Positions 19,401-53,300 of a DNA stretch of 64,000 nt are shown here, one piece after another. The notes beneath the pieces are model-generated. The model did not search any database. It had not been told where the DNA came from and was given only the letters and a program-made list of their open reading frames with translations. Positions within the stretch are counted from its first letter, which is position 1, and each line of letters begins with the position of its first letter. The DNA comes from Camelus ferus (lineage: Eukaryota): the NCBI RefSeq assembly GCF_009834535.1, contig NC_045711.1:20460001-20524000 (forward strand), given 5' to 3'. The translations under genes were made by a program, and so were the position numbers.

Positions 19401-22400
19401 GCAAGCACACGACCCTGGCAAAGATTCCCAGGTGCCAGCTTCCCGCGAGGGTCTTACAAAGAGGACACCCAGAAAACCAGACAGACTGGGATGGGTCAGA
19501 CTGTCTGCTGGGCTGACACCCGCGAAGGGCCCAGAGGGCTCTTGGGAGGGACAGGGGCACCCTCTGCGGGGGGCGTCCAGAGGCCCAGGGCCGCTGATAG
19601 GTGGGGACCTGGTGACTGATGCCTCAGAGGAGCCCCGCCGCACCAGGAAGACCCTTCAAGGGAGACCGCGGGGAGGGAGCTGTGACGCACTGCCCGCCCT
19701 CTGCCCTACGGAGGTCAGTGTGGCTCCAGGCATGGCCAGGGCCAGGCCCGGGGGGGGACAGCCAGAGGACGTGCTCCAGCGGGGACCCACTTGGGCACAT
19801 GGGGTCCCCTCATGTCAGAAGCGGCCTCCCTGCCGCTGCGGTTTCATCTTCTTGACGGTAATTTTCCAGGACATGATGACACACGGAGAAAAAATGTGAA
19901 AAATATGCGGAGGTGACCTCAACGCCAGATCTTCCAGCTGCCTCGTGAGGGCGCTTGTCTCCCTCCCGCTGGCCCACAGACCTCCCTCTCAGCCCAGACT
20001 CTCCTCTGACAATGGTTTTTGGTAACAGGGAACATAAAGCCTCTTCCCTTGAGGCTTGGAGCTTAAATGAATCACTACTCCAGGGACGCGGGCCAAACCT
20101 CTGTCACTCCCAGAGCCAGCCGCCCTCTGGAAGGAGCGCCGAGCCAGCACGAGGCTGACTGACCGGACAGCCCTGCACCCTGAACCCGAGCGCCTGGCCC
20201 GCCCGCCCGCCCTGGGCTGGTGTCCACCCCCGGGCCCTCCCCTCCTCGAGCAGAAGAAACGAGGGGAGAGCTTTCCGGACCTGGAAAGGCTGGGCCAGGG
20301 TGGCACGCGGGTACCGTCTGAAGCGGGGCTGCTCCCAGGCACCTGGTGTGGCCAGGTGCACATGTCCGGGCACAAGGTCCACAAACCCCCAAAGGACTGA
20401 AGAAGCAGGCGCAGGGCACGGTGGGGGAGGCTCTCCTCACCCGCAAGCCTGGCAGCTGCCCCCAGGGAGCCCAGGGAAGCTGGGCACTCAGGTCCGTGAG
20501 CCGCAGGGGGTGGATGCACACAGTGGACCAAAGGGCCAGGAGCAATCCCAACAGGGAGCCCTGTGCGCTGATCTGGACCGGGTAATGCAAACCAGGGGGT
20601 CCCGGGTGCCCACGCACCCACCGTCCACTATGGCTCGCAGGCTCGACACCCATCTCTCCCCGAGTCATCGTGACTGAGACCCGGCAGGACAGAGACAGCT
20701 GGAGGGGAACCTGCCTGTCACCGGGCTTCAAAAACTGCCTCAAGACTTGGCCGGGACCTTCAAAGCCAAGGACCTGTCTGCCAGCAAACCTCGGCGGGCA
20801 TTCCAGTTGAGGCCAACACTGTTCTTCTCAGGACAGTTGGGCCCTTGGGCCGCCACCGGCGCCTGGGGGGCATCCACCCACAGGGCAGGGCCAGGCCCGC
20901 ACCATGACCTGGGGCCACACATGGGGGACAGCGGGGGTGCTCTTGAAAGGCACGTCACAGACAGGCACCCCAGGCTCTAGCCAGGCTCCTCCCAGCCCTG
21001 TGTTCTAAACCTGCCCGTAAGTAAAGCAGGGAGCAGGAGGCAAGGCTGACACCTGCCTGAGGCGGGGTGCAAAGTGCCGGGCGAGACCCTGGGGCCGCGT
21101 CTCCAGCGGACGAGACCACCCCCTGGAAGGTGAGGGGCAGTCGGGGGAGGGTGACCGCTGTCAGCGCCCGCCCTGCCCAGGGGGTCGGGGCCTTTGATCA
21201 CAGACCCCTGTGCCAGCTGCGTGGGGGGACGCCTGCTGGGATCACACCGGCAGCACAAAGGGCTGCGGGGTGGCCTCCGGGGCCAGCAGGAGGACTTCAA
21301 AGGACAGGCCAGGGGCCGCTGGGCAGCCCAGCCTCTCCCCGCACCCGGCTCTGACGGCCAGTAAAACTACCTTCTAATAATTAACGTTCTGAGATCAAAG
21401 GCGGTAGCCGCCCGGGTCTGTAAACCATCCCGGGCCTCAGCCGAGGACCTGCCTGCATTTTATCCTGTCTCTTCTGACTCTCTATTCAAATCCAAAACCA
21501 CACACAGGCAAAACACTAATGGGGAACTTGGAAACTCTTTTTGATTACCAAAGTGTACCTTTGAAGTTCCCCCAAAAGTTCTGTTTTGTTCCCTTCTCCC
21601 CTCCCCCAGGACTTAAGGGGACACAAAGCAGACACCATGTGGCTGGCCGGGCCCCCGGGTGTGCGGCTGTCAGTGACAGGAGGCGTGAGGCAGGCGGGCG
21701 GGGGACGCTCCACAATCAACCAGCTGCTGGGGCTCCCAGATCAAAGACACGCACTGCTGGCGGCCAGGCGGACTGTCCCCAGGACCCCTCCTTCTTGGAG
21801 CCCCTGGGGTCAGTGCTCGGGGAGGCACTGGGACCCTGCCCCTGGACAGTAACCACGTCCCGGGCCAGCACCAGCCCCCCAGACACCAGCAGGTTCCCAA
21901 GAGACACAGAGACCTGCAGCCTTCAGGGTGGGAGAAAGTGACAGCCAGCCCTGGCACCAGATTTCTGGCCCCCAAACGCTGGGGCCTCCAGAGAGAGCAG
22001 GTCCGGTGGGAGTCAGGCCCCAACCACAAGTGTTCGCTTCTGATGGCTGATCTCAGGGTCCAGGCTGTGAGACAGGGGACTTCATGCTGTTTCTAATGGG
22101 GTCCAAACACCAGCGTAGAAGCTACTGGGTCCCCAGAGGGCCAGAGCACTACCACTGCCACCTCCCCAGGATGCACGCCTGTCAGGGGGACTGCCTGGGT
22201 CCCCCACCCCTCCCCTGTCCATTCAGCAAGAACACACAAAGGGGGGCTCAGGGAACAGGAGTGGTCCCCGCGCCTGCCCCTTGGCAGGGGTCCAGGCTCT
22301 GTCCCACGGCCGAGCCCCCCCCTCAACTAGGCCCTGCAGGCACAGGTGCCCAACCCTCCCCCATCCCCAGGGGTGTGACCTGGAGGCAAGAGTGAGGAGG

Positions 22401-25400
22401 GGGCCCCAGAGGAGACAGGATGCAGGCGGCGAGCTCCAGAACTAAAACGTTAGTTAACCACAACCAGCAGTGTTGCTAACACCGTCACTGAAACGGGATG
22501 GATACCCGGAAGGCAAGGATGGCTTTATGGGGGTAACTGACCCAGGACCTCACCACACAATCAAACTGAAGGAGGAAGAACACATGGGGTCATCTCGATG
22601 TGGAAAAAACAGCTCATAAAGCTTTATAGCCCGCTTACGATAAAGAAAAATTCTCAGGACACTAAGAATAGGAACTCCTGACTTGATAAAGGCTTTTCCA
22701 CAGCACACATCATCCTTCAGGCAAACTACTGCCTCCAACGTCACGGTCAAGGTCAAGCAGGGAAGCCCACTGAACTGGCTGCCAGTCAACAGACACCAGA
22801 GGCCCAGCCACTGCGACATGACAAGAAAACACTTGAGAGAAGGAGGAGCATCAAGACAAAAAACAAAACTGACATGATTTGCAGAGACTCCAAGTGAAGC
22901 CAAGCACTGCCGGAACCAGTGAAGCAACAAGCCCACAGCCTTCCAGCCCCCAGCGCCTCCTCAGGGGCCGAGCCCAGGAGGTGGGCAGCCCAGAGCTGGG
23001 GAATCCACATACCTCTACTGGCAGCAGGGTCTGTGAGCACTGTGCAGTGAGCGGTCACATGGAGGGACCCCAGAAGGCAGTGGAAGCTCAGTCGTATGAC
23101 TTGTGACAGCCCTACTGAAGAAGGTCCTGCACCAGCATCCAGCTGGAAAACTGACCCCACAGGGGCTCAGGCCTGTCCCCTAGCTTAGATGCTCCGACAG
23201 GGCTGCAACTGGTCAGGGCAGCCTGACCCACCAGACCGGCACCATCAGATGGAGGGGTGGAAGACACTGGTGCGATGCCAAGAGCCACCTGCAGAAGTGT
23301 CGCCCACCTGGGGGGGGGGCCCTTGCTCGAGGGGCCACTCTCTGACCCGTCACTGCCTGCTCAGTGTGACCCAAATTGCAGGACGCCTTCCACCGCTCAT
23401 GTCTGTTGGGGTCAGAGCAGTGGACAGGGGTGGGCATCACTGTGGGGGAGGGGGTGGGACAGGGACGGCTGGAGCCCGAGGCACTCAAGGACAGACTCAG
23501 CATCGAAGACAACGTGCTGCTGGCAAAACCTGCCCAACACTGCACTGGTGGTGGTGTCTACACAGTAAGTTCCACCTCAACAGAGCTAACCACACAGGGA
23601 AGACGTCAAAGCGGCAGCCCAGGGCCCAGGCCAGTTCATCCCAGCTCAGGGAGAGCTGCAGCCCTCCTCCCAGCTGCGGCTCAGGGTGGCCAGGCGCTCC
23701 CACGCCCCAGTCCCTGCCGGAGACGCCCAAGGCCCCACCCACAACGCCTGTGAAGGGTGAGCAAACTTGCCCTCTCCCGCCTGTTCAGGGAGCGCCCCAC
23801 ACGCCCACGGGCTGGTGGCACAGACAGCAGGGGAGCTGGGGGGATGCCCGGCTCAGGGGTAAGCGTGTGTGGGACAGTCAAGGCCAAACCTCCTTCACGT
23901 CAAAAGCCAGCCAAAACCAGCAGCCAGGCAGAAAGTGGCAGTGCCAGGAGGCGGGTTCTCCGGCTGTGACGTGGCTATGGGGACACACAGGTTTGCCAAA
24001 ACCTACCCACCTGTATTTCTAAAACGATGACTCAACGAAGCTGATCTCAGACCGAACAAAACCCCAAGAGCACTCCCTGGAGACAATGACAACGCTCCCG
24101 GCAACCCTGCTGTACCCCAGGCTGACCGGCCGGAGGTCAGGACACAGAGAAAGGACCCCGGCACCCAGCACGCCCTTACCGGCTCCGGCTCCGGCTCCGG
24201 CTCCAGCTGGGGCTCCTGGCCAGGCCTCGACTTCTTCGGCTTGGAGGGGCCCGCAGGGCTGGAGAAGGACTTTGGCAATTTGGCTGAAGATGACGTCAGA
24301 GGCCTCGCAGACCCGGAGGGGCCCCCCAGCCGCTGTCCTCCACCCGAGAAAGGAACAAAAGGGGCAGGCGAGGGCTCCTTCAGGATCTGCTCTGTCTGAG
24401 CGTCTGCGAGGCCGGCCCCCAGGCTGGCTGTCTCGTCCTGACGGCTCACATCACCCCGGCTGAGCCCCGCTGAGTTCAAAGGAAGCCGAGGGCCGCTGGC
24501 GGCCGGCTCGGCCGCCGTGGATGGCGTCAGGCTTCCCGGGCTTTTGCTCCAGGAGGGCCCAGGCTCCTGCTTGCCGGCAGAGTCACATCGCTTCATGGCA
24601 AACCTGCAGGGGGAGGCCCGGAGAGCAAGTGAAACTCCACACTCAGCCCCTGCCCCCGGACTCCGGCGTTGTGCCCTCTGGTGACAGCCACACCGAATCC
24701 AGTCCCGTGGATGCTCGACTCCCCACGGCCCCATCCCGTCCACCGCTCCTGGGGACAGGAGCACATACGGGGCCCCCACGCAGCCCTGTCCACCCTGCAG
24801 CCAGCAGACTCCTGACCGGACACACCGCGCCCCACGGCGCCCAGCCTCCCAGGCTGCTGGCGGGAGAAGCCACTGGGCAGGGCAGCTGGGCGTTCCCATG
24901 TTTGCTGTTCCCTGTCCTCAGAGACCCCAGCTCTCTTTACCAAACCAGACTCAGACGCCCCCACCTGATGATGGCACTGCCCCCGGTGATGCCCAGCGAC
25001 TGCAGTGTTGTGCTCTGCAGGGCAGCCCTGCCAGTCACCTGTTGGGAGGGAAGGACATCCCGCTGACCCCTCCCTAAGCGCCCTCCACCTGCCAAGCCCA
25101 CCACGCACCACCTGCCTCCACCCGGGCACTGTGTCATGGGTACCGCAGGGTCCCCCAAAGGCATGGGTCCAGCCCCTGCACCCTAATCTACACCCACGTG
25201 TTTGTCAGCTGGCCCGCATCGGTCCCCCCACCCCACCCCATGTGAGGGCTTGGCAGGCAGAGCTCGGGCCAGGTGAGCCACATCTGGACCGCGCACCAGC
25301 CCTCTGAGCGCTGGGACTGACCACGATGGCCCCAATCCAGGCCCAGATGCCGGAGGCACGGTGGTCTGTCTCCTCCGGCGGAGGGAGGGCTCGTGCCCCA

Positions 25401-28400
25401 GACGCCTCCCACTCACAGCCCTGAAACCCCTGTCCCTCTCAGCCCCCGGTCAGGAATCTCCAACTGGGATAAAGAAGTGGGCGTGTCTCGTCCACATCGC
25501 GGGGCCCTCGGGGATGGCGGCCACCCAGGGCCAGGAGAGGGCGCTTGGCCAGGGTCAAAACAAAAAGCCCCTGTGAGCCAGGGGACCAAGCGCCAGGAGG
25601 GTCCCCCGTCACGGGCGGGCAGGCGGGGACAGCAGGGCCTCAGTGCCAGGCCAAGCCTGCACCACGCCGCACTCCGTTTTGAAAAAGATCAAAACACAGA
25701 GCAAAGCAAATATTTATTAAAATGAAACCACTTTTGTAACTCCTGGGCTTTAAGAGAAGCTGAGAAAACAAACAGGGCTCTGAGGGAGGTTTGGGAGCAG
25801 CCCGGGCGGCCCGCGGTCGGTTCCAGTGGAGCCGGCGTCGTGCCTTTTTTCCATGAAACACATCACGCTTTCAGAGCCCAAGTCTCCCTGTCGCTGCTTT
25901 GAAGGCAGGTCTGAGGGAGTGAATTTTCCAACTGGAAAGTGGGGCTGGGCCTGCGTGGAGACAGGGAGTGGGCGGCGGGGCGCGGGCCGGGCGAGCGGGC
26001 CGGCAGCTCACCTACCTCACCCCTCATGTACACGCAGACTGGGCTGGCCTCACACGGCTGCTCCAGACGCTCCCTGCAAGGACAGAAGAGAAAGCGCCAC
26101 AGGTGGCTGCTGCCGGGGGGCACGGGGGCCTCCGGACAGTACCCAGCCAGTCACCGTGGAAAACTGCCCACCCCGACTGCCCCCGTGGCTGGCCATCAGC
26201 AAGTGGCCTGGGGGTGTCTCCCACCTGCCTCCAGGCCCAGAGCACAGGAAGGACACGGAGCAGGGGCACAAGCCTCGGGTCACTGTCAGCTGTGCTTGGG
26301 GTTGGCAGTGAAAACCTCCCAGGGACCCTGAGAAGCACCAGTAGCACTTGGCACGAACCCACTATGTGGACTCTGAGGAGGGCTTGGGGGTGACACCAAG
26401 ACAAATGGGGCAGCGGAGGGGTGGACACAGCCACCAACGTCCTCCCCTGTAAACCAGAGCCTAAGATGGGAGGGAAGGGCACCGAGAAGGACAGGTGGAC
26501 AGGCCTGAGGATGCGGGTGAGCGGGCACACAATGTCACCCACACCCACGGGACAGCCATCCCCACCGCGCACTGACCTGCGCTGGCCCTCGAGGTTACAG
26601 GGCACCGCGTGGCCGAGCCCTGACTCAGGATGGTTAAATGCCTGACAGCAGGCCTGTGACAACCAAGTAAAGTTGAGTACTACATCTCCTGACACAGAAC
26701 TACAGAACTGGCCCCCAGATTGACGCCCCAGGCCCCAGGGCTCACACGGACACACCCCGCCGGGACAGGGAGAAAGTGGCTGGCTGTGAACACACACGGA
26801 CGCTCCAAACACTGGTGACCGCACTCTCCGTGTGGGCTCAGCTCCTTTCGCCACCTCTCTCATTCACTTTCAGTTTTTGCTTCTGAGTGTTCCCCTGGGC
26901 GAGGACACACAGCCCAGAGCCTGCTGCAGGGGCCCCTGGAGGAGCTCGCTCTCCCCAAGACTGTCCTTTACCAAGAAGCTGCTCCCCGGGGAAGGCTTCC
27001 GGCCCTCAACCAGGACAACGAGCAACGCAGTGCAGCCATGGTAGGTGTGGCCCTGCACACGCGGCGGGGCCATGTCGTGACCCAAAGGGCCGGGGAACTG
27101 GCCCACCAAGCCCCAGCAACCCCCAGCCTCAAGAAAACACGAGACTCCGAGGCGCCAGGGAGACGACCCCAGCCGGGCCCGCGCTCTTCGTCCTGAGGCC
27201 AAGACAGAGGCGGAGCGAGGGAGGTGCACTCCAGCAAACAGGATCGCAGGGCCAGGAGGGGGAAGGAGGTGGGGAGGCGTGGGGGTCCCCTTTCTCCCAA
27301 GGGCGACAGAGACAAACACCTGGGCTCAGAAAGCGGGCCGACCACCCGTCACGGGACAAGCGGGGTCCCCTCTGCTCTCAGGGTCTCCAGCCAGGAGTCC
27401 TCCCCAGAGATCCCTGCCCAGGGCACCCGATGGTGACACGGGGACCACAGATCATAAACAGGGATAGCGCGCGGCAGCGCCCGGGAAGGCCTGCTTGCCT
27501 GCCGCCCTCAGAGGCCTTGGACATCAAACAGCCGCGGCTTTGATGTCGGCTCCTCCAGGGGGATCAGGTTCCCGAGTGTGGGATCTGAGGAGAGGCCTGT
27601 AAACACGCCGAGGGGAGGAGTGGCCGCGATCGCTTCCAGACCTTCCCGGCCGATTAGCAGCCTCTCCCATCCGCGCGCGAGAACAGGGACCTGGGCGTTC
27701 CAGGGAGTGAGGGAGGAGAGCCGCCCCTCCCCCAGCAGGTCTTGCTGAAGGTCCGCGGGTCTCCAAGGGAACTCAGCGGGGCTCCCGGGACCCCTGGACC
27801 CTGGACCTGCCCCCACACCCCCGCCTGGGCAGAGCCACGGGGCGCCATTTGGCCTGGAAGACGGTGCCGGGGGGGGGGGGGACTGGTGGGGTCTCGTTCC
27901 CCCTAAGGCCAGCAAACCTGTGCCTGTGGCCCGGCCAGGGGCCGGGTGGGGCGGGGGCTGTGGTTGCTGTGTTCTTCACCCCCGCGGAGAGGCCACCTCA
28001 TGGGCTTGGGCCGTGACCCGTGGGCTTGGCCATGACACCAGGCTGGGAGCAGAGGGCAATGGGCTTCGGGGAGAATCTAGCCTGGCGGTGGCACCTGGAG
28101 CCTTCCCTGCAGAGATGCCCAAGAAGCAGAGGTGAGACTGGCCAGCCCACTCGAGGCCAGAGTTATCTACGGCGGGTACTGGCCCACGTGGGCCTGAAGC
28201 ATGCCCAGAGCCGGCACAGGGGAGGCCAGCTCCAAGTGTGAGAGCTCCTACCAACAACAACATAGAACACCTCCTCCCCCGCTGACCGCGTGTACAGAGG
28301 GCGATACCTGGGACATGCCGGGAGGAGTTAACTGTATTCCTGAAATTAACTGCACCTGCTTTCACTTTCCTTTGCTGTGGCTGCCAGAACACTCTGAATC

Positions 28401-37529: not shown

Positions 37530-37950
37530 CTTCCGTTCACGTGACCCACCGGCCCGGCGTCAAACAACTTTATCTGCAACAGCCAGACGCACAGCCACGC
37601 GGCCGCGGGGCGGGGACTGGGCGGGGCCAGCGCACGCTTCCGGGCCCTCCCTGCCCGGCCACGCCCCCTGCCCGGCCACGCCCCCGGTGCCTTCGCAGGG
37701 CGGGGGAGCCGGAGTCCGACACCCGCCGGGCGCGGTCTCCCCAGCCGGGCATGTGGCCCTGGGTCCCGACCGGCCGTGCGGGACATGAGCGCGCCGAGTC
37801 CTGGGCTCCCTGTCCCTGCCGGCCCGTCCTGGCCCCGCTGTCCCCCTTCCTACCCGCTGTGGTCCAGAGGGGTGGAGTGAGGCCCCGCACCTCTGCGGAG
37901 TGGTTGGCTGCCAGCCCTGTGGGGTGGTGTGAAGGCCGGGAGGCGGCTGC
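37050..37950 (-). promoter_or_regulatory. ASPSCR1 CpG island promoter
   Basis: CpG-dense region around exon 1. On the minus strand: GTCACGTGA E-box (37537-37545), CGGAAG ETS motif (37530-37535), YY1-type AAGATGGCGGC over the ATG (37522-37532), and several GC boxes upstream. Confidence 0.85.
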
Positions 37951-39639: not shown

Positions 39640-40176
39640 CTGCATGTTAACATTCACAGCAGCTTCATCTAATAGTCAAAGGCTGGAATGAAGCCAGATG
39701 TCCTTCATCGGGTGAGCAGTTAAAGGATGTGGCGCATCCACACATGGAACACCACTCGGCAATCAAAGGAACAAACTGCTGACACCGCAGCCTGGGTGAG
39801 TCTCCCGGGAAACTGGATGAGTGAAAAGAGCCGGTCCCTAAAGGCTACATGCTGTGTGACTCTCTTTATATAACATGGAAATGACAGCATTTTAGAAATC
39901 GAGGACACAGTAAGAGTTGCCAGACGTTAGGGGAGGCGGGGTTATGGGAGAGCAGCGCCAGGGACCTACACTGGATAAGACTGGATACAGCATGATATGC
40001 ATGTGAAGGAACATGGGTGCAATGTATTCAGGGCACTATCCCGGTTGGGATTTTGTGCTAGTTTTGCGAAATGTTACCATTGCAAGAAAGTACATAAATA
40101 CAGGAGGGCTTGCTCTCTGCTATTTCTTATAACTGCATGTACCTCTACAGTCATCTCAATAAAACTCTCAAAAAAC
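39640..40176 (+). mobile_element. Old L1 3' end (L1MB/L1MC-like)
   Basis: CACAGCAGCTTCATCTAATAGTCAAA...CAGATGTCCTTCA...TGAGTGAAAAGAGCC...CTATTTCTTATAACTGCATGT...CTCAATAAAA. Confidence 0.75.
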
Positions 40177-40289
40177 GTCAAAGCCCCAAAAAGCTAAAAA
40201 TTTAATATGATAAATCGCTGCTTTAACTCTTTTCTACACCTTCACCTAGGTGCACCAACTGTTCACGTTTTGTCCCAGTAGCCTTTTCT

Positions 40290-41620
40290 CTCTGCATTTG
40301 TACAAGCATGTGTATTTATATTTGAAAGTAAGTTGATGAGATCCAGGCACTTTCCCTCCAAATAGTTCAGCAGCTCCAAAAATCCCAGGACCTGCTCCTA
40401 CTCAATCGTAACCAGTCACCATGCCCAACAGCCATGCAGTCATGGACACAATAATATTATCTAATACACAGTCCAGTTTAGAATTTCCCCTGTTGTCCCC
40501 AAATGGTCCTTTACAGCCGGTTGTCACATTGCGTTGAATCTGTTTTCACTCCCTTAACCTACCACGGCCCCACCATCTTTTGTTTTGTTTTGAATTTTCA
40601 TGACATTTGCATTATTTAGAGGCCGCAGGCTGGAGCTGCCTGATAGTTTCCTGGAGTTAAACATCTGAGGCAGTGAGGTGGGGTAGATGAAGCCCCTCAG
40701 GAAGTCCAGGATATCAGGTTGTGCCCCTAGTGTGGACGCACAGACTGAACACTTGGTGAAGATGAGGTCTGCAGGTTCCTCCACGGTCTAGGTCCCTCGT
40801 AGACTAAGTAAGCTGTGTGTGGGGCAATTCTTTGAGAGCATAAGTGTGATGTGTTTCCAATAACCGTTTGCCCAGTGGTTTTGGCATCAACTGATGGTCC
40901 TTGCCTACATCCACCGTTATAATTATGTTTGCAAAATCACAACTTTCCAACCTTGTCACTTCCTCTACATTTAATAGGCATGTTTTGGTCAAGATTTTTT
41001 AAATTCTGAAGTATTAATACAAATGAATGGATTTTTTAAATTCAGTGATTCTTTCTGATGCTCAGATTGACCCAGATTTGGCCGGTGAGACCCCCTTCAA
41101 GCTGACTTTCGTGCTCCTCTTTTTGGGGGGGGGGGAGTGACTTTTTACTTTTATATTATTTCAAACTCAGAAGTTGCAAGAACAGTATAAGGACCTCCTT
41201 CGGATCTTCGTTCTTTCTTTTCTTTTCTTTTTGAGGGGGGAGGTCACAAGGTTTATTTACTTTCAGTGGAGGCACTGGGGATTGAACCCAGGACTGCGTG
41301 CGTGCTGAGCACGTGCCCTGCCACTGAGCTACACCCTCCCCCGCTTCCGTGTGGCTCCTAGACAGACGCGCCAGTTGTTTACGTGTCGCGCATTTGCTTT
41401 ACCATCTCTCTCTCTCTTTGTCCACGTACATATAAAAATTTTTCTGTACCACCTGAGAGTAATGGAGAGTGCACCTTTGTGGCTAAACACTTCATGTGTT
41501 TCCTAAGAAGGAGGTGTTTTCTAAGAAGCAGGCATTTCCTTACGTCACCACCAAGCCGTGATTTGCCGTTGGGAGAGCTACCTGTGACGCCGTACACTGA
41601 GCGACTCTACAACCACCTGT
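40290..41620 (-). mobile_element. Fragmented old L1 (L1ME-like) interrupted by a SINE
   Basis: AT-rich, with motifs resembling an antisense L1ME 3' end (e.g. CTAAACACTTCATGTGTTTCCTAAGAA). Boundaries are approximate. Confidence 0.4.
41228..41342 (-). mobile_element. tRNA-derived SINE (Vic-1-like)
   Basis: The reverse complement reads GGGGAGGGTGTAGCTCAGTGG...TCCTGGGTTCAATCCCCAGTGCCTCC...AAATAAACC...ACCTCCCCCC. Confidence 0.85.
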
Positions 41621-44600
41621 AGCACTGACATCTTTCCTGCATCTTTTTGAGGTGTTTTTGTTATTCTCCCAGCACTTCCTCATTTCTGCCACAAGAAGGC
41701 GTCCTAGGCTCTCCCAGCCCTTGAATGCACCGTTTCTCAAGGAAGCCCTGGACCCTTTCGGAGGGGAATGGGATTTAGAAACCAAGATCTGGAGCTGAAT
41801 GTGCTCATTGCTACTGGGGTGCCTCTGCTTTGTAGGCCCCTCTTGGGGGACAGAGCTAGCATCCTGAATTCGCCCAAATCTCTCTCACTTCAAACCAAAC
41901 CTCAGTCTTCTTTCTGCTCTCCCCTCCTTCCATATTTACATTTGGTGGAATTGTATGAACTTGCCAAGAGTCAACCATTTTCAGTCTACAAAATATGGGA
42001 AACCTACATGGTTCCACTGATACCCTTTCTCCACAGTGAGAACCCTTTTTTCAGCAGTATTACTATATTTATTAACTTGCTCTGTTCCAAAATACCCTCC
42101 AAATAGCTTCAGAATTCCTTCCACCAACCAGACCTACTAAGGAAACTGTCAAGGCCTCCTTGTAGGTATTTTTGTCCTCAGAAAATTACTTAAATTCTTT
42201 ATTTCTGTGTGATTATGTTAATCTGACACCTAAGTTAATCTATTACTAAATTTTAAGGTCTTTTTTTCTTTTTTTTTAATGTAATGTTCTATTTTTGATT
42301 ATGAAAAATATTTCTTATTTTATTTAAATATTATTGGATTGAAAAGTTAAAAGTATAAGAAGAGACATATCCAGAAAAGGATCACCTCTCCTCATCCATT
42401 CTCACTCGCCCCCGGGGGAACTCATCTGCTTCAGGTTCTAGGGTAGCCTTTCTGCCTTTCTTCCCGCAGAGATGAGCATGCTAAGTGGACAGAGGTGCAG
42501 GCTCTTTCTCTCCTTCCTTCTTCCACAATAGGTGACACAGAACATACCTTCTTTGTTCTTTTCTCTACAGCCTACGTGTCCCATTCTGGGACTAGGTCTA
42601 ACTCCGCTCCCCTCTACACACAGTACATCAGAGCACAAAGTCTGTGATATGGGCGGTCACAGCACCCAGGCAGCCCTGGGAGTGGATTGCAGTGAGGTCC
42701 AGGCTCCCCTGCCCACAGTGACTGGAGCTTTGACACCTCCTAGCTGCCTGGACCTGTGTTCTTTGTCGGTAAAACTAGACCCAGGGAGGTGGAGGCTCAG
42801 GCAAGGGAGCCAGACAGAGCATCCCAGGCAGCAGTTCCCCCAGGTGGCCGTAGGAAGCCCTGAACCCAGTCAGAAGGTGAGGCTGGGGTCCTCACCCAGG
42901 CTGCACAGAGTCCCTTCAAGCCTTGCCCAGGCCCCGGCGGAGTGCTGGGGTGGGGGTGGGGGGGTGGGGTTTTTTTCCAGGTATCCCTAGTGGGACCAAG
43001 CCTGTGTTCTCCAAAAAACGTTTCCAACTGTCATTCCATTAGGACTTCAGGTCACAGATTAAGGGTAAAAATCCCCTGGCTGGGCTGGCCTGGGAACCGA
43101 TCTCCTCCCACCTGAACCCTTGGGAAATGCGTGGCTCCCTCTCAGAGCAAGTGGCTTCTCGGCCCCTCTGAGCTGGACCCTGGGAGGCAGGGCCCTGCCC
43201 CATGCTCTGCTTACAGTCCAGCCAAATGCATTGGAAATATACATATGCAAATATATACATAATTGTGGTAAAATTGCATTTTAAATTTAATCAGCTTAAA
43301 ATCTGCTTTCCAAGACAGGTCTTTCAGGAGATTTTCTGTGTTATCAATACGGCGGTGGCTTTCCACAGCCAAGGAGTGAAACGTAAGGTCCTGGTGGCCG
43401 CCTGCTGTCCACCCTCACTGCCCTCCACCGCACCGCACGGCCTCGCCAGTCCTTGCTCTCTGTCACTGGGTGCCGGCACGCTCAGCCCGCTCCCCAAGAC
43501 TTTCCTCAGCTCCCTCACAGCGCTAGGGCTATGCCCACGTGTCACCCACAGGGGGCCTCCCTGACCCCATCCCACCTGCTGCCCTCTGCCAGGTGTCTCC
43601 ATTTTCTCTCCCCTCCTGACATCACATCATCCCCCCACCTCACCCACATCAGGTAAGCCTGGGACAGGACCCCGGTGAGCAAGTGTGTGATTGTGAGGGC
43701 ATCAGCGCGTGGGGCTGCCCCACGCTGTTGTCACTTGGTGGCCTCCAGGCAGGGCAGACACCTGGGCAGGTGAGAACCTCGGCTCATCCTCACATGAGCA
43801 GGAGAGATCACACTGCTGATTTCCCCAAATGCATGTCTAAGTTGCCCCCCTACCAGATGGCAGAAGAATCAGCACGCTGGATTCAGGGGCTTGCTGTGCC
43901 CTTGGTGTCCTGCTCTAGGAAATGGATCCTGGCCCCCAGGTGGACGGCGAAGGTGTCCCTGCAAGGGGTGTAAGCCAGCGCTCAGTGCGGCCCCCACCGC
44001 CCTCTAATCAGCCCTGGGACGCCAACACAGTGGGGTCTGTACAGGGCAGGGGAGGCCACCTTCCCACTCCTCCCCGCCAGAGTGCTCCCTCCCAGGCAGT
44101 GGCGGCTTGACAGCTGTTCCCAGGATCTGCTTTAAATTAAAAAGTGGCGTGGCCCTTTAAGAGAAGCATCCGCCGCCCCCGCCGCCCTGCTGCCCCCTTT
44201 GAAGTTGCTGGCGCTGAAAGGTTCCCAGTGGCAGATCTGAGGGTTTGCTTCTGCCTCCCCAGAGGCCACGTGCGGATCACAGGGAGGGAGTGGGGCGGGC
44301 CGAAGGTCACATGGCCAGCCAGGCCTCCCTGGACCAGTGGGCTGCAGGGATGGGAACCAGCCGGAGCTCATTAGGGCTCGGCAGAGCCAGCAGCTAGGAG
44401 AGCTAAGGAGGAGGTGTCCCGCCCTCCCCGCGGGGCCTGGGGCAGCCTGACCTCTCCAAAGCCCTCTGACCTGCACAGTGAGGAACACACCTGGCACTTT
44501 GGGGATGCTCCGTGACACCCCAAGAAGCTCCATCTCCACAGAGGTGTGGACAGCCCCTCTCATCCCCATCCCCTTCCTCCCCCCAGCTTTGGAATGTGGC

Positions 44601-46574
44601 CATTCCCAGCAGACCCAGGTGAACCCACGCTCCACAGTTTGCTCAGGTCAGCGGAGGGTCCCTCTGCTGAGACTGCCCACAAGCCAGGCGGGGCTGTGTG
44701 GGAAGGGTGAGATGGGGCAGAGGTACTGAGAGGTGGACAGGTCCTTACAAATGACCAGTAGGGTCCAGGGTCCCCAGGAGTTGAGCCTGGGGCCAGGGAA
44801 CCTCATGCGTCCTCTGTTCACTGGCATGAGGGGCTGCAGAGTGAGCCCCAGGGGCCCTCACCACTCAATGAAGACAGCCGTGACTCCCACATGCTCTCAG
44901 TCCTGGGTGAGGGGTGTGTGGGTCCCTTCTGCAAGTGACCCCAAGGCTGCTGACAGCCATCTGATTCTCGGGAGAGGGTGTCTTCTGGTATCAGGCCTGA
45001 GAGCTGTCCACGAAGGCCTGTGACCAACCAGGTGTTCCCGGCTTTGCCCTCCCCTGCTTCTGCATGAGACCCCTCCAGGCTAGGGGCTTTTCTCATCAGG
45101 GCCCTGGGATGTGAGGTGAGAGGGGCTCCTGCAGACGGATAGGGGGCTTGGGGAGACCCAAAGGGCTCAAGCTCTGCGGCCACACAGCCTGGGCTTGAGG
45201 CCCCTGCCCGCTCAGAGCTGGTGACGGACCCTCAGCTGGTAGGCGAGCAGGGCTTCCTCTCAGAGCCAGCCGCCGTGGGAAGCGAAGTGGTCTGCCTCAC
45301 TTCCTTGCCCTCTTGGGCCTCAGAGGCCAGCAGCTGGGACACAGAGCTGCCCAGGTGGTGTGTGAGGCGGGGCGTCTGAGGCCAGTAGGCAGCAGGGGGC
45401 CCCAGACAGGACACAGGCAGCAGCTGTGGCCCAGGGTAGCCCTGGGCTCAGGGCCCTCGGGGATCCCCGGGAGGGGGCGGACCACGTGGCTCAGGGCAGT
45501 CCCAAGTCCAGGCAGGGACACTGGGGCTGGGGCTGCTGGACGTCCTGAGGCCCTGAAGGCCCAGTCCCAGGTGGGAGCCCCGGCATCACTGCACCCACTG
45601 CCCCCTCCTCCCCAGTGCCCGCTGGCCAGCCTGGACTCCAGGCCTGCCCCAACTTGGGCCCTAGCTCATGTGTCCTGAAATGTTCCGTCTCTGAAACCCC
45701 TTTCCCAGCAATTGGGCACGTGTCCACAAGTGGACCCCAACTCCCGTCGGCTAACTCTGCTCCTGTCTCTGTATCTTCCCCCACAGAGGTTCGCCCCCTG
45801 CACCTCCATCCTCTGTCTGGGACACCCCTCTGAAAGAGGCAGAGGCTCCCTCTGAGCTCTCACTTTCCTGGGCCTCTTTGCATCCGGGCACACATGCGAT
45901 CTAAGCTTGGCTGGAAGCACCTGCCACCCACCTGAATGGAAGCCAGGAAGCTGAGAGGCGGGAACCACACAGAACCCACCCTGCACAGGGCAATGGTGGG
46001 GGGGGGGGCAGGCAGAGAAGGGCGGGTGCCACGTCCAGCATCTGTGATGTCCACGGGAGCATGGCAACGAGGCAGTGTGGGTTATTGTTCCTGCCTCTCC
46101 TCCCCAAGCTCTGGGGTCTGCTCTCCAGACATTCCACGAGCCTGCCATGCCCAGGACCTCAGTCTCCCTTGGTCCCTGAGGGACGGCCAGCACCCAGGAG
46201 TAATGACTGTCACTGATCCATGGTTGCTGGCCTCATTTCATGTTCCCAAGAACCCTGGGAGGCAGGCACTGTTCTGGTCCCCACCTTACAAATGACAGAC
46301 CTGGAGTTCAAGAGACCCAGCGGGGGCAGAGCCAGGCCCTACGTGCAGAGGTCGGGCTCCCGGTCCCCCGATGCGCCCTGCAGTGTGGGAGCCCCACAGA
46401 CATCCGTCTACGGAGGGAACGGGGAGGCACATACATCCCATGCCCCAGCAGGGGCTCTCCGGGGCGGGGCGAGCCCACTACGTTCCAAGCCCCACACTCC
46501 GCTCACCTGATCCCACCTCCCCAGTCACCTGATGCTTCAGACCCGGCCTGCTGCCCTCATTGGTGTTTGGGGGT

Positions 46575-47260
46575 TTTTTAGGTAAAATTCATAATATACA
46601 ACCACTTTAACTTGTACAGTTCTATAACAGTACATTCACAATGTTGTCCAACCATCATCACAATCAATTTTAGAATGTTCATCACCTCCAAAAGAAACCC
46701 TGTACCCATTAGCCGTCACTCTCTGTTCCTCCCTGTCCCTTGGCAACCAGCAAGCTGCTTCCTCTCGCTGCAGATGTGCCTGCTCTGGGTATTTCATGCA
46801 CATGCAATCCTACGGTATGTGGCCCTCTGCGTCCGGCGCATTTCACTTAGCTGTGTGTTTTCAGGTTCCCCCACGTGTAGCACGTGTCAGCACTCTGTTC
46901 CCTTTTATGGTTGAACGGAGTTCCGCTGTATCAATGGACCACATTTTGTTTATCCATTTTATCTGCTGTGGACGTTTGGGTTGTTTCCACCTTTTGGCTG
47001 AAGTGAGTACTGCTGCTGTGAACAGCCATGTGCAAGCTTTCGTTTGAACATCTGTTTTCATCTCTTTGGAGACCATACCCAGGAGTGGAATTGCTGGGTC
47101 ATGTGCTAATTCTGCATGTAACATACTGTTTCCTACAGCGGCTGCACCGTTTTTCATTCCCACCAGCAGCATGCCGGCCCAGGTCCTCCACGTCCTCACC
47201 AGCACTTGTTGCTGCCCATGTTTTTGATCATCTGAGTGAGTGTGAGGTGGCCTCTGACCT
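46575..47260 (-). mobile_element. L1MB-like 3' end, antisense
   Basis: GTACATTCACAATGTTGTCCAACCATCATCACAATCAATTTTAGAATGTTCATCACCTCCAAAAGAAACCCTGTACCCATTAGC...GTTGTTTCCACCTTTTGGCT...GGAGTGGAATTGCTGGGTCAT. Confidence 0.85.
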
Positions 47261-49174
47261 GCTGCTTTTCAACCCACTTCTCAGGGTCCTAGTGGCCTCT
47301 GGGCTGGTTGCAGGCAGCCTGGAAGCCGAGACCCAGACCTGAGTGGCTCCAAGGATCTTCTGTCTCGGGAACGGCCCCCTCCAGACTTTGGGAGCTGAAA
47401 ACTCTGAGTGGGGGAGTCTGAGGAGCACAAGGCAGAGCTGGCCCCTGGGGGAATGGAGCCCAAAGGCAGGGCCAGTCTGTGCTAGTCAAGAGGAGGGCAA
47501 AATGTGAACAGCCCAGGGTCTTGTGGACTGTCGCCACCAAGGGTAGGGGTCGAGGTCCAAGCTTCATCAGAGGGGGAACGAGGAGGCAAGACACAGCAAG
47601 ACAGGGGTGTGCTGGAGAAGCCACTTCACTTCTGCCCGCAGCATGGAATCAACCAAGTGGGAACTCATTTTGGTCAACGTGCAGGCTAGAACTCCTTCCA
47701 GCAATGCCAGCGAGCACAGCGCTATGCTCCCCGCTTGCCCTGGAATTCCACTGGCCGGCATCACGGCTGACACCGCAGCGCCGAGCGCTTTCACGCATGG
47801 GCTCCCGCGATCCCACGGCCGCCCTCTGACGGAGGAACAGTCATTGCCCCGCTTTGAAGAAGAGGAAATGGAGGCACACAGAGAGGTCGCGGGCCTTGCG
47901 CAGGATCTCCCTGCCAGGAAATGGCTGGGAGCCAGGTCAGCAGGAAGCACGACCCTAGGCAGGCATGACGTCCCACTGGCAGCAGAGCCTCCCTGCCCGG
48001 GACTTGGAATAACTGGCTCCCAGAGGTAGAGGGCTCTTGGGACAGGTTCTCCCGATGCCTAGGTAGCCGGGGGCAAGGGGGACACTGTCATTTGGGGGAC
48101 CTTTGTTTGAAGTGCCTGCCTCTGGCCAGCCCCACACGTGGCCATTACGATGGCCTGACTACAGGGGGGTGGCCGGCGTGGGTTTCCAGATGAACAGAAC
48201 TCCCCGTCCACTCTTCCGCTAGTGTCTCTGAGTCTCAGTTTCCCTCATCAGGAAGATGGGTGCACAGCTGCTCCCCAGTGCCAGTGGGGAGGACTTGTAT
48301 TTTTCACAACCTGCCCTTTCCTTCACTGCGTGACCCCAGGCAAGGCCGACCTCCAGGGCACCTCAGCCTGATCTTCAGCTTTGAGGCTTAAGTTCCAGCT
48401 TAAACCTCACCCAACAGCTCTCAAGGGCCCTGTCTGGTCTCCTGGAGTGTCTTCCAAGAGCCTGGCCTGCTGTGTGGTGTGCAGGGTGGGTGTTGTAACT
48501 TTCTAACCTGCAGCTCGATACTGGCCCCAGGACTGGTGAGGACCGTGGTCGGGGCCAACAGGGCAGGAGGAACGCAGGAGCGGGGTCCCCGTTGCTGCCA
48601 GAAACTCCCGCAACCTCTAATTTCCTGCCCCAGAGGAGCTGCAGGTGCCTCCCAGGGGACACAGCTTCCCCACTGCCCTGGACTAGGAGGGGGCTCAGGG
48701 AGCCCCGCCCCGGTTCTAGACCCCAGTTCCATAAGACCTATTCCCTGTCTCTAAAATGGCGTGATGACATTCACGGAGCTGCGGCTGGGAGGGGAATGAG
48801 GGGTCCACCAAAGCTGCCGATGGCACTTGGAGTGTGTGGAGGCTGAATAAATGCTTTTCTTTCTTTCATCCACCCAGCCGGCCAGGGCGGAAGCCTCCCA
48901 AGTGAACACCTGCACCCCACCCCATTTTGATTTCTGAGGAGGCATCTCCTCTGCCACCAGTGAGCGCGCTGGGAAGGTGAGATGATGGAGCAGAGGTGCT
49001 ACGTTGGGCGGAGGTCACTGAACAGAGATCAAGCCTGCAGCTCTTCGACCCTTGCCCATGCCCCAGTGGCGGCTGGGGAGGGAGGGGTTCTTGGGGATCC
49101 TCCTGGAGGAGGGAGGCACGAAGCCAGGGTGCACGCGGGGAGGATCCAGGACCCCACCCCGAGGCCCACCGACC

Positions 49175-49189
49175 TCAGTAGGTGGCAGC
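49175..49189 (+). promoter_or_regulatory. Candidate CTCF site upstream of NOTUM
   Basis: TCAGTAGGTGGCAGC, one mismatch to the CTCF core. Confidence 0.35.
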
Positions 49190-49862
49190 GCCCCGTCTGC
49201 CCCCGCTGCCTCGGAGGGCCGCTCAGATTCTGTCCACCCAGGCGCGGGACAGGGCGACTCCCCCGTGGCGCCGTGCCGCGGCGCCCGGTTCCTCCCGCAG
49301 GTCGCCGAGGGCGCCGGGGCCTCGCGCCACACCTGTCCGCTCCTTCGGGAGGCCCCGGCGCCGCTGCTGCCGGCCCCTCGGCGCGGAGCCCTGTGTCCGC
49401 CGTCGCTTTGATCCCGGGGGCCCCGCTGGATAAAAGTCCCGGGCGGCTCTGCGCCAGCGCCAGAGGGGAGGCAGCCGAGCCGGGCGTACCAGCGGGCTGG
49501 CGCTGGGCGAGCGACGCCGAGGAGTCGGGGCCGCGGGGCGGCCCGCGCCGGCCGCGGTGAGCGCGGGGCTCCGGGACGGTTCGGGGTGGGGGCTGCGGCC
49601 CGGGGTCCCGGTCGCCCGCGGGCTGCTCTGGCCCTGGGCGGAGGGGGGCGAGGGGGACCCCGGCGGCTCAGGTGAACGCGCCCCCTGAGTCCCCGGCTCG
49701 ACGGGCTCGGCCGGCTGCGTGGCGGACGGAGCTCCCCCCGTGCGGAAAAGCCCCGCTCCTTCCCCGGCGGCCCCCGCCCGCCTCCCCCCGCCTCCCCTTC
49801 CAGCCGCCCGGGGGCGGGGGCGGCGGCGCCGGGCTGGCCGCGGTGAATGAGCCGCCGGGGCC

Positions 49863-50092
49863 NNNNNNNNNNNNNNNNNNNNNNNNNNNNNNNNNNNNNN
49901 NNNNNNNNNNNNNNNNNNNNNNNNNNNNNNNNNNNNNNNNNNNNNNNNNNNNNNNNNNNNNNNNNNNNNNNNNNNNNNNNNNNNNNNNNNNNNNNNNNNN
50001 NNNNNNNNNNNNNNNNNNNNNNNNNNNNNNNNNNNNNNNNNNNNNNNNNNNNNNNNNNNNNNNNNNNNNNNNNNNNNNNNNNNNNNNNNNNN
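49863..50092. other. Assembly gap (230 N)
   Basis: Run of N inside the extremely GC-rich NOTUM island. Confidence 0.99.
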
Positions 50093-50391
50093 AGGCTCGG
50101 CCCCCGCCGCTCATTGGCGCGGGTCGGAGCCAGCGCACCCAGACCTTGCGCTGCCCTCGGCCGGCTGCGCGCGGAGCCCGAGCTGCCCAGGCCGACGGCG
50201 CCCGGCCCCGAGAGCCTCGACGCCAAGCCGCTCGCGCCTCCTCGGCCAGGCCCAGTGCGGGGAGCGGTGCGAGCGAGCAGGCGCGCCTGGCGCCCCGCGG
50301 CCCGGGCACCCCCGGCCCGGCGTCCCCGCCCCCGCGCCGCCTCAAGGCCGCCCGCTCTCCGCAGGTGGCCGCGGGCCCGAGCGGCGCGGCC

Positions 50392-53300
50392 ATGGGCCGA
50401 GGGGTGCGCGTGCTGCTGCTGCTGGGCCTGCTGCACTGGGCCGGGGGCGGCGAGGGCAGGAAGACCTGGCGGCGCCGTGGCCAGCAGCAGCCCCCGCCGC
50501 CGCCGCCCCCGCCCCGGGCCGAGGCGGCGCCGGCGGCCGGACAGCCGGTGGAGAGCTTCCCGCTGGACTTCACGGCCGTGGAGGGCAACATGGACAGCTT
50601 CATGGCGCAGGTCAAGAGCCTGGCGCAGTCCCTGTACCCCTGCTCAGCGCAGCAGCTCAACGAGGACCTGCGTCTGCACCTCCTGCTCAACACGTCGGTG
50701 ACATGCAACGACGGCAGCCCCGCCGGGTAAGGTCCGCAACCGCCCGCGCGACCGGCGCGCCCCTGCCGGTGGCCCCGGGGCCGCGGGCCGTCTTGTCGCC
50801 AGTGGGGTCGCACCACCGCCTCCCTGTTTCCGCCCAGACGCACGGAGTATCTGCGCTGGACCCTCCTTGCTGGCCTCAGCGGTGCTCGCCCCGGGGAGAG
50901 GGCTCCCGTCGAGCCTCGGAGGCGCTGGCCCCGGAGAGGGCCCGGCTCGGCGACCCGCCGCGCGGGGGGTGGGGCAGCGATTGAAGCCCTGGTACCAGGC
51001 CAGCCCGGGCACTGACCCCTCGGCCACCGGTGCCCAGCCCCTGTGCTCGCGTCCTTCGGTCCCTGGGCGGGGAGATGGCGGTCCGAGAGTGGCCCTGGCT
51101 CCAGCAGGAGGAGGCGACACAGCGGGGCGGGGAGAGTCCTCCCCCGTACTCCCACCCCCACCCCAGCTCGACTCGCCCCGTCTGCTGCCTGCGGCTGCCT
51201 GGACTGCCAGGGATCCCAGCCAGCCGGAGAGACAGGCAGGGGGCGCAGGTGGGACGGAAGAACCTGGGGTGCGGCATTCGCCCATCTCCAGCCCGAAGTA
51301 GATGAAGGAAGGATACGAGGCTGGGGGTTGGGGAGGAGTTGGGGGCACCCATGCCCTCAGCGACTCCACAACACGAGGAACGCAAAGTTAGAGCGGGCCT
51401 CGGTAGGACGGCTGCGACCCGCCTCTGTGGCGCCCGCGCCCCTCCACGCCCGCCTGTCCGACCCCAGTGCCTCTGCCCCACGCACACTCTTCCAGCGAGG
51501 GTGGTTTGCACTCTCCAAGCGCCACTGCGAGTCCCAAGGAGAATCCCCAGCCCCAGTGAAGAACCCCCTCCCCCACGCCGGGCCTCGGGCGCCGAAGTTA
51601 CAGCGCGTCCCGCGCGGGGCGGGCCGTGGGGATTTTCCACGGACCACACAGCCCCTCGCCGCCCTTCCCCGCCCCGCGAGCGCCATCTCCCGGGACTGGC
51701 CGATGCTGGCCGGGCCGAGCGCGCTCTGCGGGGGCCTGGCCGCTGGCGCCCCCGTGCGGCGCGGGCGCTCGGCGACAGGTGGAATGACCCTTTCCTCCCC
51801 GGAGCTGGGCCCTGCAGCCCAAGCTGACCACCCGCTCTGCCCGACCTCCCTTGCAGCTACTATCTGAAAGAATCCAAGGGCAGCCGACGGTGGCTACTCT
51901 TTCTGGAAGGTGAGTCCCAGGGGGCTGAGGAGGCGGGTTGGGCGAGGGTCCCCTGGGCACTGGACCCTGAGGTGGTGGCTGTGCACACAGGAGGCTGGTA
52001 CTGCTTCAACCGGGAGAACTGCGACTCGCGGTATGACACCATGAGGCGCCTCATGAGCTCCAAGGACTGGCCACGCACTCGCACAGGTCAGCAGGCCATG
52101 GAGTGCCCAGGAGTCCCCTGCTGGGGGAAGGGGGCTACAAACCTGAAGTTCTGGAAGAAGCCCCCTTCCTTCACTCCCTAGAGCCCCAGAGAGGCCCCAC
52201 CCCATCCACCCCTCCCCTCCCCCAAGGGTAGGGAGCACTCACACTCACCCTTATTCCACAGGTAACTTCCCAGGGCTCACCGTGCCTGCGCGGTACGTGG
52301 TCGGTCCCTAAATGAAAGCAGTTGGTGGAGTGGCCATGCCAGATATCACAGCCTGGCTGGGCATCCTGGCCATGGTGACTCTGTGCAGTAACTAAACTCG
52401 TCCATTCCCCACTTCCCTGGCCACCCTGGTTCAGGCAGGTGTCACCACCCACCTCCTTGCTGGGGCCAAGTAGGATACCCCCACATCCCCAGCCTTCCTG
52501 CCGTCCTCATCCCTGCATGCCCCCTCCCCCCCAGAAAGACCCACTGCCTCTGTCCTCCCGGCCACAGGCACGGGGATCCTGTCCTCCCAACCAGAGGAGA
52601 ACCCCCACTGGTGGAATGCCAACATGGTGTAAGAAGGGGCAAGGGGTCCTTCCTGGGGGTCCTGTCCACGGAAGTCCTTCGTGGACAGTCCTTCCTAAGG
52701 GGGCTCTTAGGGGGGAGTCCATCTGAGGGGTCTTGTCCTTGGGAGGATCTTGTCCTGGGAAAGATCCTTCCTGGGGCAGGGGTCCTAACCTCAGGAGTCC
52801 TTCCTGGGGAAGGTGGTCCTTCCTGGGGTCCTCGGGCAACAGAGGAGCATGGCTCACGTCATCCCTGTGTCACAGCTTCATCCCTTACTGCTCCAGTGAC
52901 GTCTGGAGTGGAGCTTCATCGAAGTCTGAGAAGAGTGAGTCCCCTGGCCTCCCCCTCCCTCCCCCTCCCAGAGCCAGGGCAGGGGAGATGGAGATTCTGG
53001 GGAAATACAGACTTTCAGCCTCGTCACTTCCTCTAACCCTTTGATGTGTCCCAGGGTGCCCGTCTCCAGCACCCACTGGCTGGCTTGTACATGGCAGGCC
53101 TGACCCTTGGGGGGCCTCGCTTCTGGGTGTTCCCTGGGGAAGGGCCCTCAGAACAGCCTTGTATACCTGATCCACCTCCCTCCAGTCTACCCCAGCCCCT
53201 GGCCTCATCCCCTGGAAGACCCTCCAGGCCCCCAGCTCTATCCCTCCCCCTTCCAACCTGGGGGTAGGAGGCCTTGCTCTCTGCCCAGGCCCCCACTCGA

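Follow-up and report, generated by a model that had tools for sequence, protein, structure and literature searches.

Wnt-responsive elements such as those of AXIN2 intron 1, the SP5 promoter and an NKD1 intron, described as Wnt cis-regulatory modules (W-CRMs) in PMC4140642, hold several matches to the TCF/LEF consensus SSTTTGWWS within a few hundred base pairs, their sites are deeply conserved, and the gene concerned encodes a negative-feedback regulator, secreted or intracellular, that responds to Wnt in many cell types. Here we analyze a stretch of 64,000 nucleotides of Camelus ferus (contig NC_045711.1 of assembly GCF_009834535.1, forward-strand positions 20,460,001 to 20,524,000; hereafter the window, numbered from its first base), which carries the Wnt deacylase gene NOTUM and its neighbor ASPSCR1 (TUG) and shares all of these features. 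Two differences set it apart: the main camel cluster lies about 29 kb from its presumed target promoter, in the intron of another gene, and the camel elements are known from sequence alone. The locus is a textbook type of Wnt-responsive element placed in a neighbor's intron and involves no new mechanism.

In Drosophila, the W-CRMs of notum/wingful and nkd contain HMG-Helper sites that are read by the C-clamp of TCF/Pangolin (PMC4140642). The fly gene encodes the orthologous Wnt deacylase, likewise a TCF-driven feedback inhibitor, and one HMG site of the camel window, at 21394, also has a conserved RCCGCC word 6 bp away. Unlike in the fly modules, however, helper words are not enriched near the TCF sites of the camel window.

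NOTUM is among the top Wnt targets (PMC9771724; PMC11460698). Using chromatin immunoprecipitation sequencing (ChIP-seq) of Apc-null mouse hepatocytes, Canal et al. (2016) reported two places with beta-catenin and TCF4 peaks, one being the Notum promoter and the other lying "around 30 kbp upstream" of the Notum transcription start site (TSS), and assigned the upstream one to Notum; for the mouse Notum ChIP-seq sites they cite Gougelet et al. (2014) and Torisu et al. (2008) (PMC4790944). Their text gives neither sequence nor coordinates and does not place the distal site in Aspscr1. The promoter peak matches a conserved island at 49393-49438 of the camel window, and the -30 kb peak matches a pair of conserved non-coding elements (CNEs), CNE5 and CNE7, that lie 24.7 and 28.9 kb from the NOTUM start. 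Because this mouse site is already published, the idea of a distal input to NOTUM is not wholly new; a search of the open-access literature found no paper that ties NOTUM regulation to ASPSCR1 introns or describes the five-site element reported below.

A further comparison is the ZRS enhancer of SHH, which lies in an LMBR1 intron and typifies a genomic regulatory block. There too, conserved non-coding elements occupy the introns of an unrelated, broadly expressed neighbor, and the camel locus follows this pattern, ASPSCR1 introns 7 and 5 harboring CNE7 and CNE5, respectively, so that the "bystander gene" framing of the locus fits its anatomy. It differs in that the distances are short (25-29 kb), the enhancer-target link is deduced, and the synteny comes from placental mammals only. 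Given the type and clustering of the sites, the status of NOTUM as a Wnt target, the mouse peaks and the matching distances, we read the conserved elements upstream of NOTUM as Wnt-responsive, and we consider it likely, though well short of certain, that they are its distal and proximal Wnt-feedback enhancers.

Results

TCF/LEF Sites Are Over-Represented and Clustered in the Window

Every TCF/LEF site that an earlier note on this DNA had reported is present (Table 1). The 9-mers are tabulated; in the text a site is named by the first base of its 7-mer, one base further on. All of the listed 9-mers match SSTTTGWWS except that of the 21740 site, where a T replaces the first S in camel, and the left half of the 27520-27547 module is the weaker ATCAAAC. 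When compared with dinucleotide shuffles, either global or made inside 1-5 kb blocks, CTTTGAT is found 12 times where 3.9-4.6 would be expected. CTTTGAW, with an expectation of about 10.7, is found 26 times, a count reached in none of 300 shuffles. The six sites that fall within 1 kb (20758-21746) were likewise equaled in 0 of 300 shuffles. As real DNA is not a dinucleotide chain, we added 720 words, all non-CpG permutations of the letters of CTTTGAW, as empirical controls. Among these CTTTGAW ranks first both in total count (26; mean 5.7, next 21) and in clustering within 1 kb (6; next 4). A repeat or transposon origin of the modules was rejected, since each module occurs only once in the window and none coincides with a tandem repeat.

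Table 1. Positions in the camel window of the TCF/LEF sites, conserved elements and genes considered in the text.
Feature	Position	Strand	Sequence or content	Remarks
TCF 9-mers (starts)	20758, 21191, 21295, 21393, 21558, 21739, 25896, 27537, 44196, 47851, 49405, 53038
CNE7	21185-21760			Conserved non-coding element of about 575 bp, 2.5-3.0 kb into ASPSCR1 intron 7
CNE7 TCF site	21191-21199	+	CCTTTGATC	Identical in whale, fox and Apodemus; CCTTTGACC in dugong
CNE7 TCF site	21295-21303	-	CCTTTGAAG	Identical in whale, fox, Apodemus and dugong
CNE7 TCF site with helper-type word	21393-21412	-	CCTTTGATC (21393-21401); GCCGCC (21407-21412, plus strand)	HMG site identical in the four other species
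CNE7 TCF site	21558-21566	+	CCTTTGAAG	Identical in the four other species
CNE7 TCF site	21740-21746	-	CTTTGAT (plus strand GATCAAAG)	Identical in the four other species; full GCCTTTGATC in rodent and dugong
Sixth site of the 1-kb module, outside CNE7	20758-20766	-		Unaligned in whale, rodent and dugong; 5/7 bases in fox
CNE5	25540-25910		One consensus TCF site, GCTTTGAAG (25896-25904); weaker HMG-like words; FOX-like words	Conserved element in the short ASPSCR1 intron 5; blastn blocks in whale, fox, rodent and dugong
Inverted pair, ASPSCR1 intron 4	27520-27547		ACATCAAAC, GC-rich spacer, GCTTTGATG	Both arms kept in whale and fox, with a spacer indel; no alignable rodent or dugong sequence
Intergenic conserved block	44100-44280		CCTTTGAAG (44196-44204); GCCGCC runs	Aligns in fox, rodent, dugong, deer and bat
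Single site	47851-47859	+	GCTTTGAAG	Not conserved: CTTAGAA in deer and bat, CTTTAAA in fox
NOTUM proximal-promoter island	49393-49438	+	CCGCCG; GCTTTGATC (49405-49413); TATA-like ATAAAAG (49430-49436)	About 1 kb 5' of the NOTUM ATG
Single site, NOTUM intron	53038-53046	+	CCTTTGATG	Not conserved in deer or fox
ASPSCR1 (TUG) coding span	10583-37496	-		tblastn with orthologues; Pfam TUG-UBL1 and UBX domains
ASPSCR1 exons 1-4 (approximate)	37496-37425, 36570-36514, 33936-33814, 32217-32150	-		tblastn
ASPSCR1 exons 5-8 (approximate)	26102-26013, 25041-24961, 24608-24219, 16323-16177	-		tblastn
NOTUM coding span	50392-56845	+		ATG and signal peptide at 50392 (translation); last exon 56528-56845
MYADML2	62.8-63.8 kb			Downstream of NOTUM
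Assembly gap	49863-50092			NOTUM CpG-island promoter or 5' untranslated region (UTR); 300 bp 5' of the ATG

CNE7 Is a Conserved Five-Site Element in ASPSCR1 Intron 7

For comparison we fetched orthologous loci by exact-protein look-up from gray whale (L001), Arctic fox (L002, L008), the rodent Apodemus speciosus (L003) and dugong (L004), together with additional, gap-rich loci from red deer (L005), the bat Myotis (L006) and fin whale (L007). When 200-bp windows between 9.5 and 45.4 kb were ranked by their identity jointly in fox, rodent and dugong, the first place went to ASPSCR1 exon 1 and its promoter, the second to CNE7 and the third to CNE5; the next non-exonic block was 44100-44280. The top three non-exonic windows coincide with modules that the earlier note had drawn from motifs in camel. 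In the same interval, 4 of the 14 non-exonic CTTTGAW sites are identical across fox, rodent and dugong, a score that again puts this word first among the 720 controls (mean 0.05, maximum 2), and the only control words that reach 2 are ones that overlap the TCF motif. The densest or joint-densest kilobase for CTTTGAW is CNE7 in each of the whale, fox, rodent and dugong loci.

The densest cluster had been assigned to ASPSCR1 intron 7, and CNE7 indeed lies between coding exons 7 and 8. Its distance from the NOTUM ATG is about 28.9 kb in camel and 27.9 kb in fox; the earlier estimate that feedback elements would lie up to about 30 kb from NOTUM agrees with this and with the mouse peak. In a blastn search of the rodent locus the strongest non-exonic match was 21273-21746 (83% over 491 bp, E 2e-135), and the element is present in dugong too. 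It contains five consensus TCF sites, four of them full SSTTTGWWS 9-mers and one an 8-of-9 match, within about 550 bp, along with a conserved ACAAAG (21623), a conserved TAATTA (21378), and an ACCACA (21497) that is kept in the four-species alignment and is not fully conserved in the three-species map. All 35 motif columns of CNE7 are identical in whale, fox and rodent, as against 73% of its other columns (permutation P 0.002); with dugong added the figures are 34 of 35 and 52% (P 0.0003). Strong purifying selection on these sites across placental mammals is supported by the alignments, and selection appears to have kept the TCF sites of the elements unchanged for about 100 million years. The sixth site of the 1-kb module, at 20759, falls outside CNE7 and is probably a lineage-specific chance occurrence.

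Conservation of this kind could have another origin, namely that CNE7 and CNE5 were kept as a regulator of ASPSCR1 splicing, an unannotated exon, or a structured or non-coding RNA, the TCF-like words being incidental. CNE5 accounts for a third of intron 5, which is short, the dromedary gene model has an exon elsewhere in intron 7, and the RNAalifold energies of 21450-21640 lie 3.8-5.1 standard deviations below those of column shuffles. We attribute this low folding energy to the inverted CAAAG and CTTTG words. As a coding exon CNE7 is excluded by indels of 1, 2, 4, 5 and 8 bases, which break the reading frame; as a structured RNA it was rejected, since it matches no Rfam family, RNAalifold gives it next to no covariation (term about 0), and double changes occur at just 2 of 52 pairs. 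In addition, the TCF columns are the most constrained within CNE7, which would not be predicted if the TCF-like words were incidental, and we judge this origin very improbable.

Several other blocks in the ASPSCR1 region are conserved. Those at 16850-16990, 19785-20195, 13161-13393 and 13650-13794, in introns 7 and 12, align to rodent and/or dugong with 73-84% identity and have no consensus TCF site. A block at 9235-9354, between the ASPSCR1 3' end and CENPX, shares about 82% identity with fox and rodent and is probably part of a UTR. Its ATCAAAG at 9290 is unchanged in fox. The dromedary ASPSCR1 model mentioned above (P0004, KAB1265961.1) omits the long exon 7, has a 37-codon exon in intron 7 (18915-19025, minus strand) and reads past the normal stop into 3' sequence (10229-10583, minus strand), and it appears to reflect either a faulty prediction or an alternative exon that is seldom used.

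Conserved Sites Continue Toward NOTUM and Its Promoter

CNE5 is about 24.7 kb from the NOTUM ATG in camel and 25.0 kb in fox. Dugong has lost its one consensus site, 25897, which whale, fox and rodent retain unchanged. Of the modules that had been placed inside ASPSCR1 introns, those at 20.8-27.5 kb are indeed there (introns 7, 5 and 4), whereas those at 44.2, 47.9 and 49.4 kb are in NOTUM-ASPSCR1 intergenic or NOTUM promoter sequence and that at 53.04 kb is in a NOTUM intron. The intergenic block at 44100-44280 lies on the 5' side of both genes, 6.7 kb from the start codon of ASPSCR1 and 6.2 kb from that of NOTUM; its site 44197 is retained in dugong and bat, as well as in fox and deer, where it reads CTTTGAT, and is deleted in rodent. 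At the proximal promoter all 46 bp of the island are the same in camel and fox, within a high-scoring segment pair of 68% overall identity; for site 49406 the comparison is with fox, the deer, bat and fin whale assemblies being gapped there. The conservation expected of the motifs is therefore borne out, to varying depth, for CNE7 and for sites 25897, 27538, 44197 and 49406, and it fails at 20759, 47852 and 53039, three lineage-specific sites for which chance is the best explanation.

Two further motifs lie on the 3' side of the promoter TCF site (window 49430-49560): the TATA-like ATAAAAG, 17 bp away, and a donor-like GGTGAG at about 49556. NOTUM may have a non-coding first exon that starts near 49460; the TCF site would then sit at about position -50 relative to the TSS.

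The Two Genes Stand Head to Head

The identification of the gene pair as NOTUM and ASPSCR1 is upheld by tblastn, Pfam and a match to solved structures. We mapped ASPSCR1 by tblastn of orthologues (P0004, P0026, P0015, P0013 and P0017), themselves found via one exon, against the window. Seven coding exons precede 24219, intron 7 spans 16324-24218 (7.9 kb), and exon 8 (PVDRDPVVCHPDLE...) starts at 16323 in camel coding-exon numbering. The NOTUM exons were located with a peptide that served as a lead only; the identity of the gene is based on a Pfam PAE match, on solved NOTUM structures matched at E 4e-37, on the translation, and on the Camelus bactrianus NOTUM protein, to which one exon is 100% identical. 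The exons in the window are 95-100% identical to the ASPSCR1 and NOTUM proteins of Camelus dromedarius and C. bactrianus. About 13 kb separates ASPSCR1, on the minus strand, from NOTUM, on the plus strand. The pair is head to head, as it also is in fox, Myotis, fin whale and aardvark, the other placental mammals sampled for gene order.

This anatomy raises the possibility that the elements are Wnt-responsive enhancers whose target is ASPSCR1 or another neighbor (CENPX, LRRC45, MYADML2 or further genes), not NOTUM. CNE7 and CNE5 are inside ASPSCR1, and its promoter, at about 37.5 kb, is nearer to them than that of NOTUM. NOTUM is, however, the only well-documented strong Wnt target nearby and has a conserved TCF site in its own promoter; the mouse upstream TCF4/beta-catenin peak was assigned to Notum by its authors (PMC4790944), and our literature search gave no report of ASPSCR1 as a Wnt target. 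A target other than NOTUM thus seems unlikely to us.

The window is 62% GC and has a single run of N (230 N), which lies 300 bp 5' of the NOTUM ATG, in the CpG-island promoter or 5' UTR, and is therefore crossed by no reading frame. Its flanks are colinear and in one orientation on a single gap-free Arctic fox contig (window 49680 at L008 5539, window 50093 at L008 4645). The anchors are about 890 bp apart in fox against 412 in the window, and the true gap may therefore exceed 230 bp. The NOTUM promoter and exon-1 CpG island is also gapped in red deer (L005 9173-9910), Myotis (L006 16536-20773) and fin whale (L007 15862-17865), and is systematically hard to assemble.

Two further features lie outside both genes. 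A match to tRNA (Rfam RF00005, 42 bits) at 41267-41338 on the minus strand, in an AT-rich patch (40-42 kb) of the NOTUM-ASPSCR1 intergenic region, is probably a tRNA-derived short interspersed nuclear element and not a tRNA gene. At 5426-5530, in a CpG-rich stretch in which the starts of the divergent genes CENPX and LRRC45 are expected, a 49-bp unit with a CCAAT box (CCCATTGGCT) and a GC box is repeated 2.1 times. The repeat duplicates a core element of a bidirectional promoter.

Discussion

The observations presented here allow us to propose how the conserved elements could act on NOTUM. TCF7L2, TCF7 or LEF1 would occupy the conserved sites of CNE7, CNE5, the block about 6 kb upstream and the promoter. 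With Wnt off, the site-bound TCFs would hold TLE co-repressors and the elements would be silent; with Wnt on, beta-catenin would be recruited and the TCF elements would become activators. The distal elements would then loop to the NOTUM promoter and NOTUM would be induced, and secreted NOTUM would de-acylate Wnt ligands and close a negative feedback loop. ASPSCR1 would be the mere host of CNE7 and CNE5 in its introns. We infer TCF occupancy (from the mouse liver ChIP-seq literature only), enhancer activity, and NOTUM as the gene that CNE7 and CNE5 serve.

Several points weigh against this reading. Under an order-4 Markov model 5.9 and 8.7 occurrences are expected against 12 and 14 observed, an excess that is only about two-fold, and an order-5 model, over-fitted to 64 kb, absorbs the motif excess; higher-order models do shrink the excess, yet they partly absorb the signal itself. 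Sites 20759, 47852 and 53039 are not conserved, and conservation was compared within placental mammals only. The mouse -30 kb peak fits CNE5, CNE7 or both, and when the rodent locus is roughly scaled the better fit may be CNE5. The general HMG/SOX consensus is satisfied by CTTTGWW as well, and ChIP peaks of SOX9 are reported in the vicinity of NOTUM (PMC9771724). Finally, helper words are no commoner near the TCF sites than elsewhere: RCCGCC is found within 20 bp of 4 of the 26 CTTTGAW sites (background 8%), and GCSGS near 46% of them (background 39-43%), neither of which is an enrichment.

The last result bears on the pairing of TCF sites with helper motifs that had been proposed for several modules. 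GC-rich motifs do adjoin several of the sites, as the proposal held, but at the frequency of the GC-rich background, and a general use of helpers and the C-clamp is not supported. Most of the TCF sites have no helper (GCCGCCR or RCCGCC within about 10 bp), and at the promoter site the word on the 5' side is CCGCCG and not RCCGCC. At 21394, by contrast with most sites, the helper GCCGCC starts 6 bp past the end of the ATCAAAG 7-mer and is RCCGCC in 5 of 5 species (GCCGCC in four, ACCGCC in rodent). A C-clamp is found in only some vertebrate TCF isoforms, and this single conserved word makes its use testable at one site.

If the motif pattern were due to chance or to a compositional artefact, the three unconserved sites, the background level of helper pairing and the behavior of the order-5 model would be expected, and for part of the list chance does hold. 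It does not account for the rank of CTTTGAW, first of 720 control words in count, clustering and conservation, for a cluster that no shuffle equaled, or for the presence of the same five CNE7 sites in four other mammals. Control words, column conservation and cross-species clustering rule out chance and composition for the conserved modules, which are not a product of chance; as an account of the pattern as a whole we find it scarcely credible.

SOX factors offer another reading. The elements could be tissue-specific developmental enhancers, independent of beta-catenin, that are bound mainly by SOX together with homeodomain, RUNX or FOX factors. The consensus WWCAAWG fits SOX sites, CNE7 has the ACAAAG, TAATTA and ACCACA words and CNE5 the FOX-like ones, and, beside the SOX9 peaks, an ASPSCR1-proximal region gains enhancer marks during chondrogenesis (PMC7187454). 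Yet all five CNE7 sites read WTCAAAG, with T before CAAAG in 5 of 5 and G after it in 4 of 5 in camel (the fifth, 21740, has it in rodent and dugong), and this form argues for the extended TCF/LEF consensus (PMC4140642) over the words that SOX factors prefer (ACAAAG, AACAAAG or AACAAT). Several consensus TCF sites within about 550 bp are a hallmark of universal Wnt feedback targets, and TCF4 and beta-catenin occupy a site about 30 kb upstream in mouse (PMC4790944). The two readings do not exclude each other, as SOX9-TCF cooperation is documented (PMC9771724), but enhancers that work mainly through SOX and without beta-catenin strike us as rather improbable.

Feedback enhancers of NOTUM inside ASPSCR1 may, as the earlier note suggested, help to explain why the two genes have stayed linked. 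A stronger form of this idea is that introns 5 and 7 hold two NOTUM Wnt-feedback enhancers of great age, going back at least to the origin of placental mammals, that lock NOTUM and ASPSCR1 into one regulatory block, through which the t(X;17) breaks of sarcoma in intron 7 would cut; we regard this as a long shot. Sarcoma fusion transcripts join ASPSCR1 exon 7 to TFE3 (PMC11031972). CNE7 lies 2.5-3.0 kb into the 7.9-kb intron 7, so the break could fall on either side of it, and an effect of the breakpoint on NOTUM is speculation. Were the stronger idea true, the derivative chromosome would keep NOTUM and CNE5, the retention of CNE7 would turn on whether the break lay in the first 2.5 kb of the intron, and the ASPSCR1::TFE3 fusion gene would itself come under Wnt-responsive enhancers.

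In gut, liver, bone and brain, NOTUM acts as a key feedback inhibitor of Wnt signaling, and it is also a drug target. Its cis-regulation in vertebrates has so far been described only as a promoter and a site about 30 kb upstream. Pinning the distal input to two short, deeply conserved elements would provide handles for reporter assays, CRISPR interference and the interpretation of variants. Variants, deletions and translocations that are labeled "ASPSCR1 intronic" may act on NOTUM.

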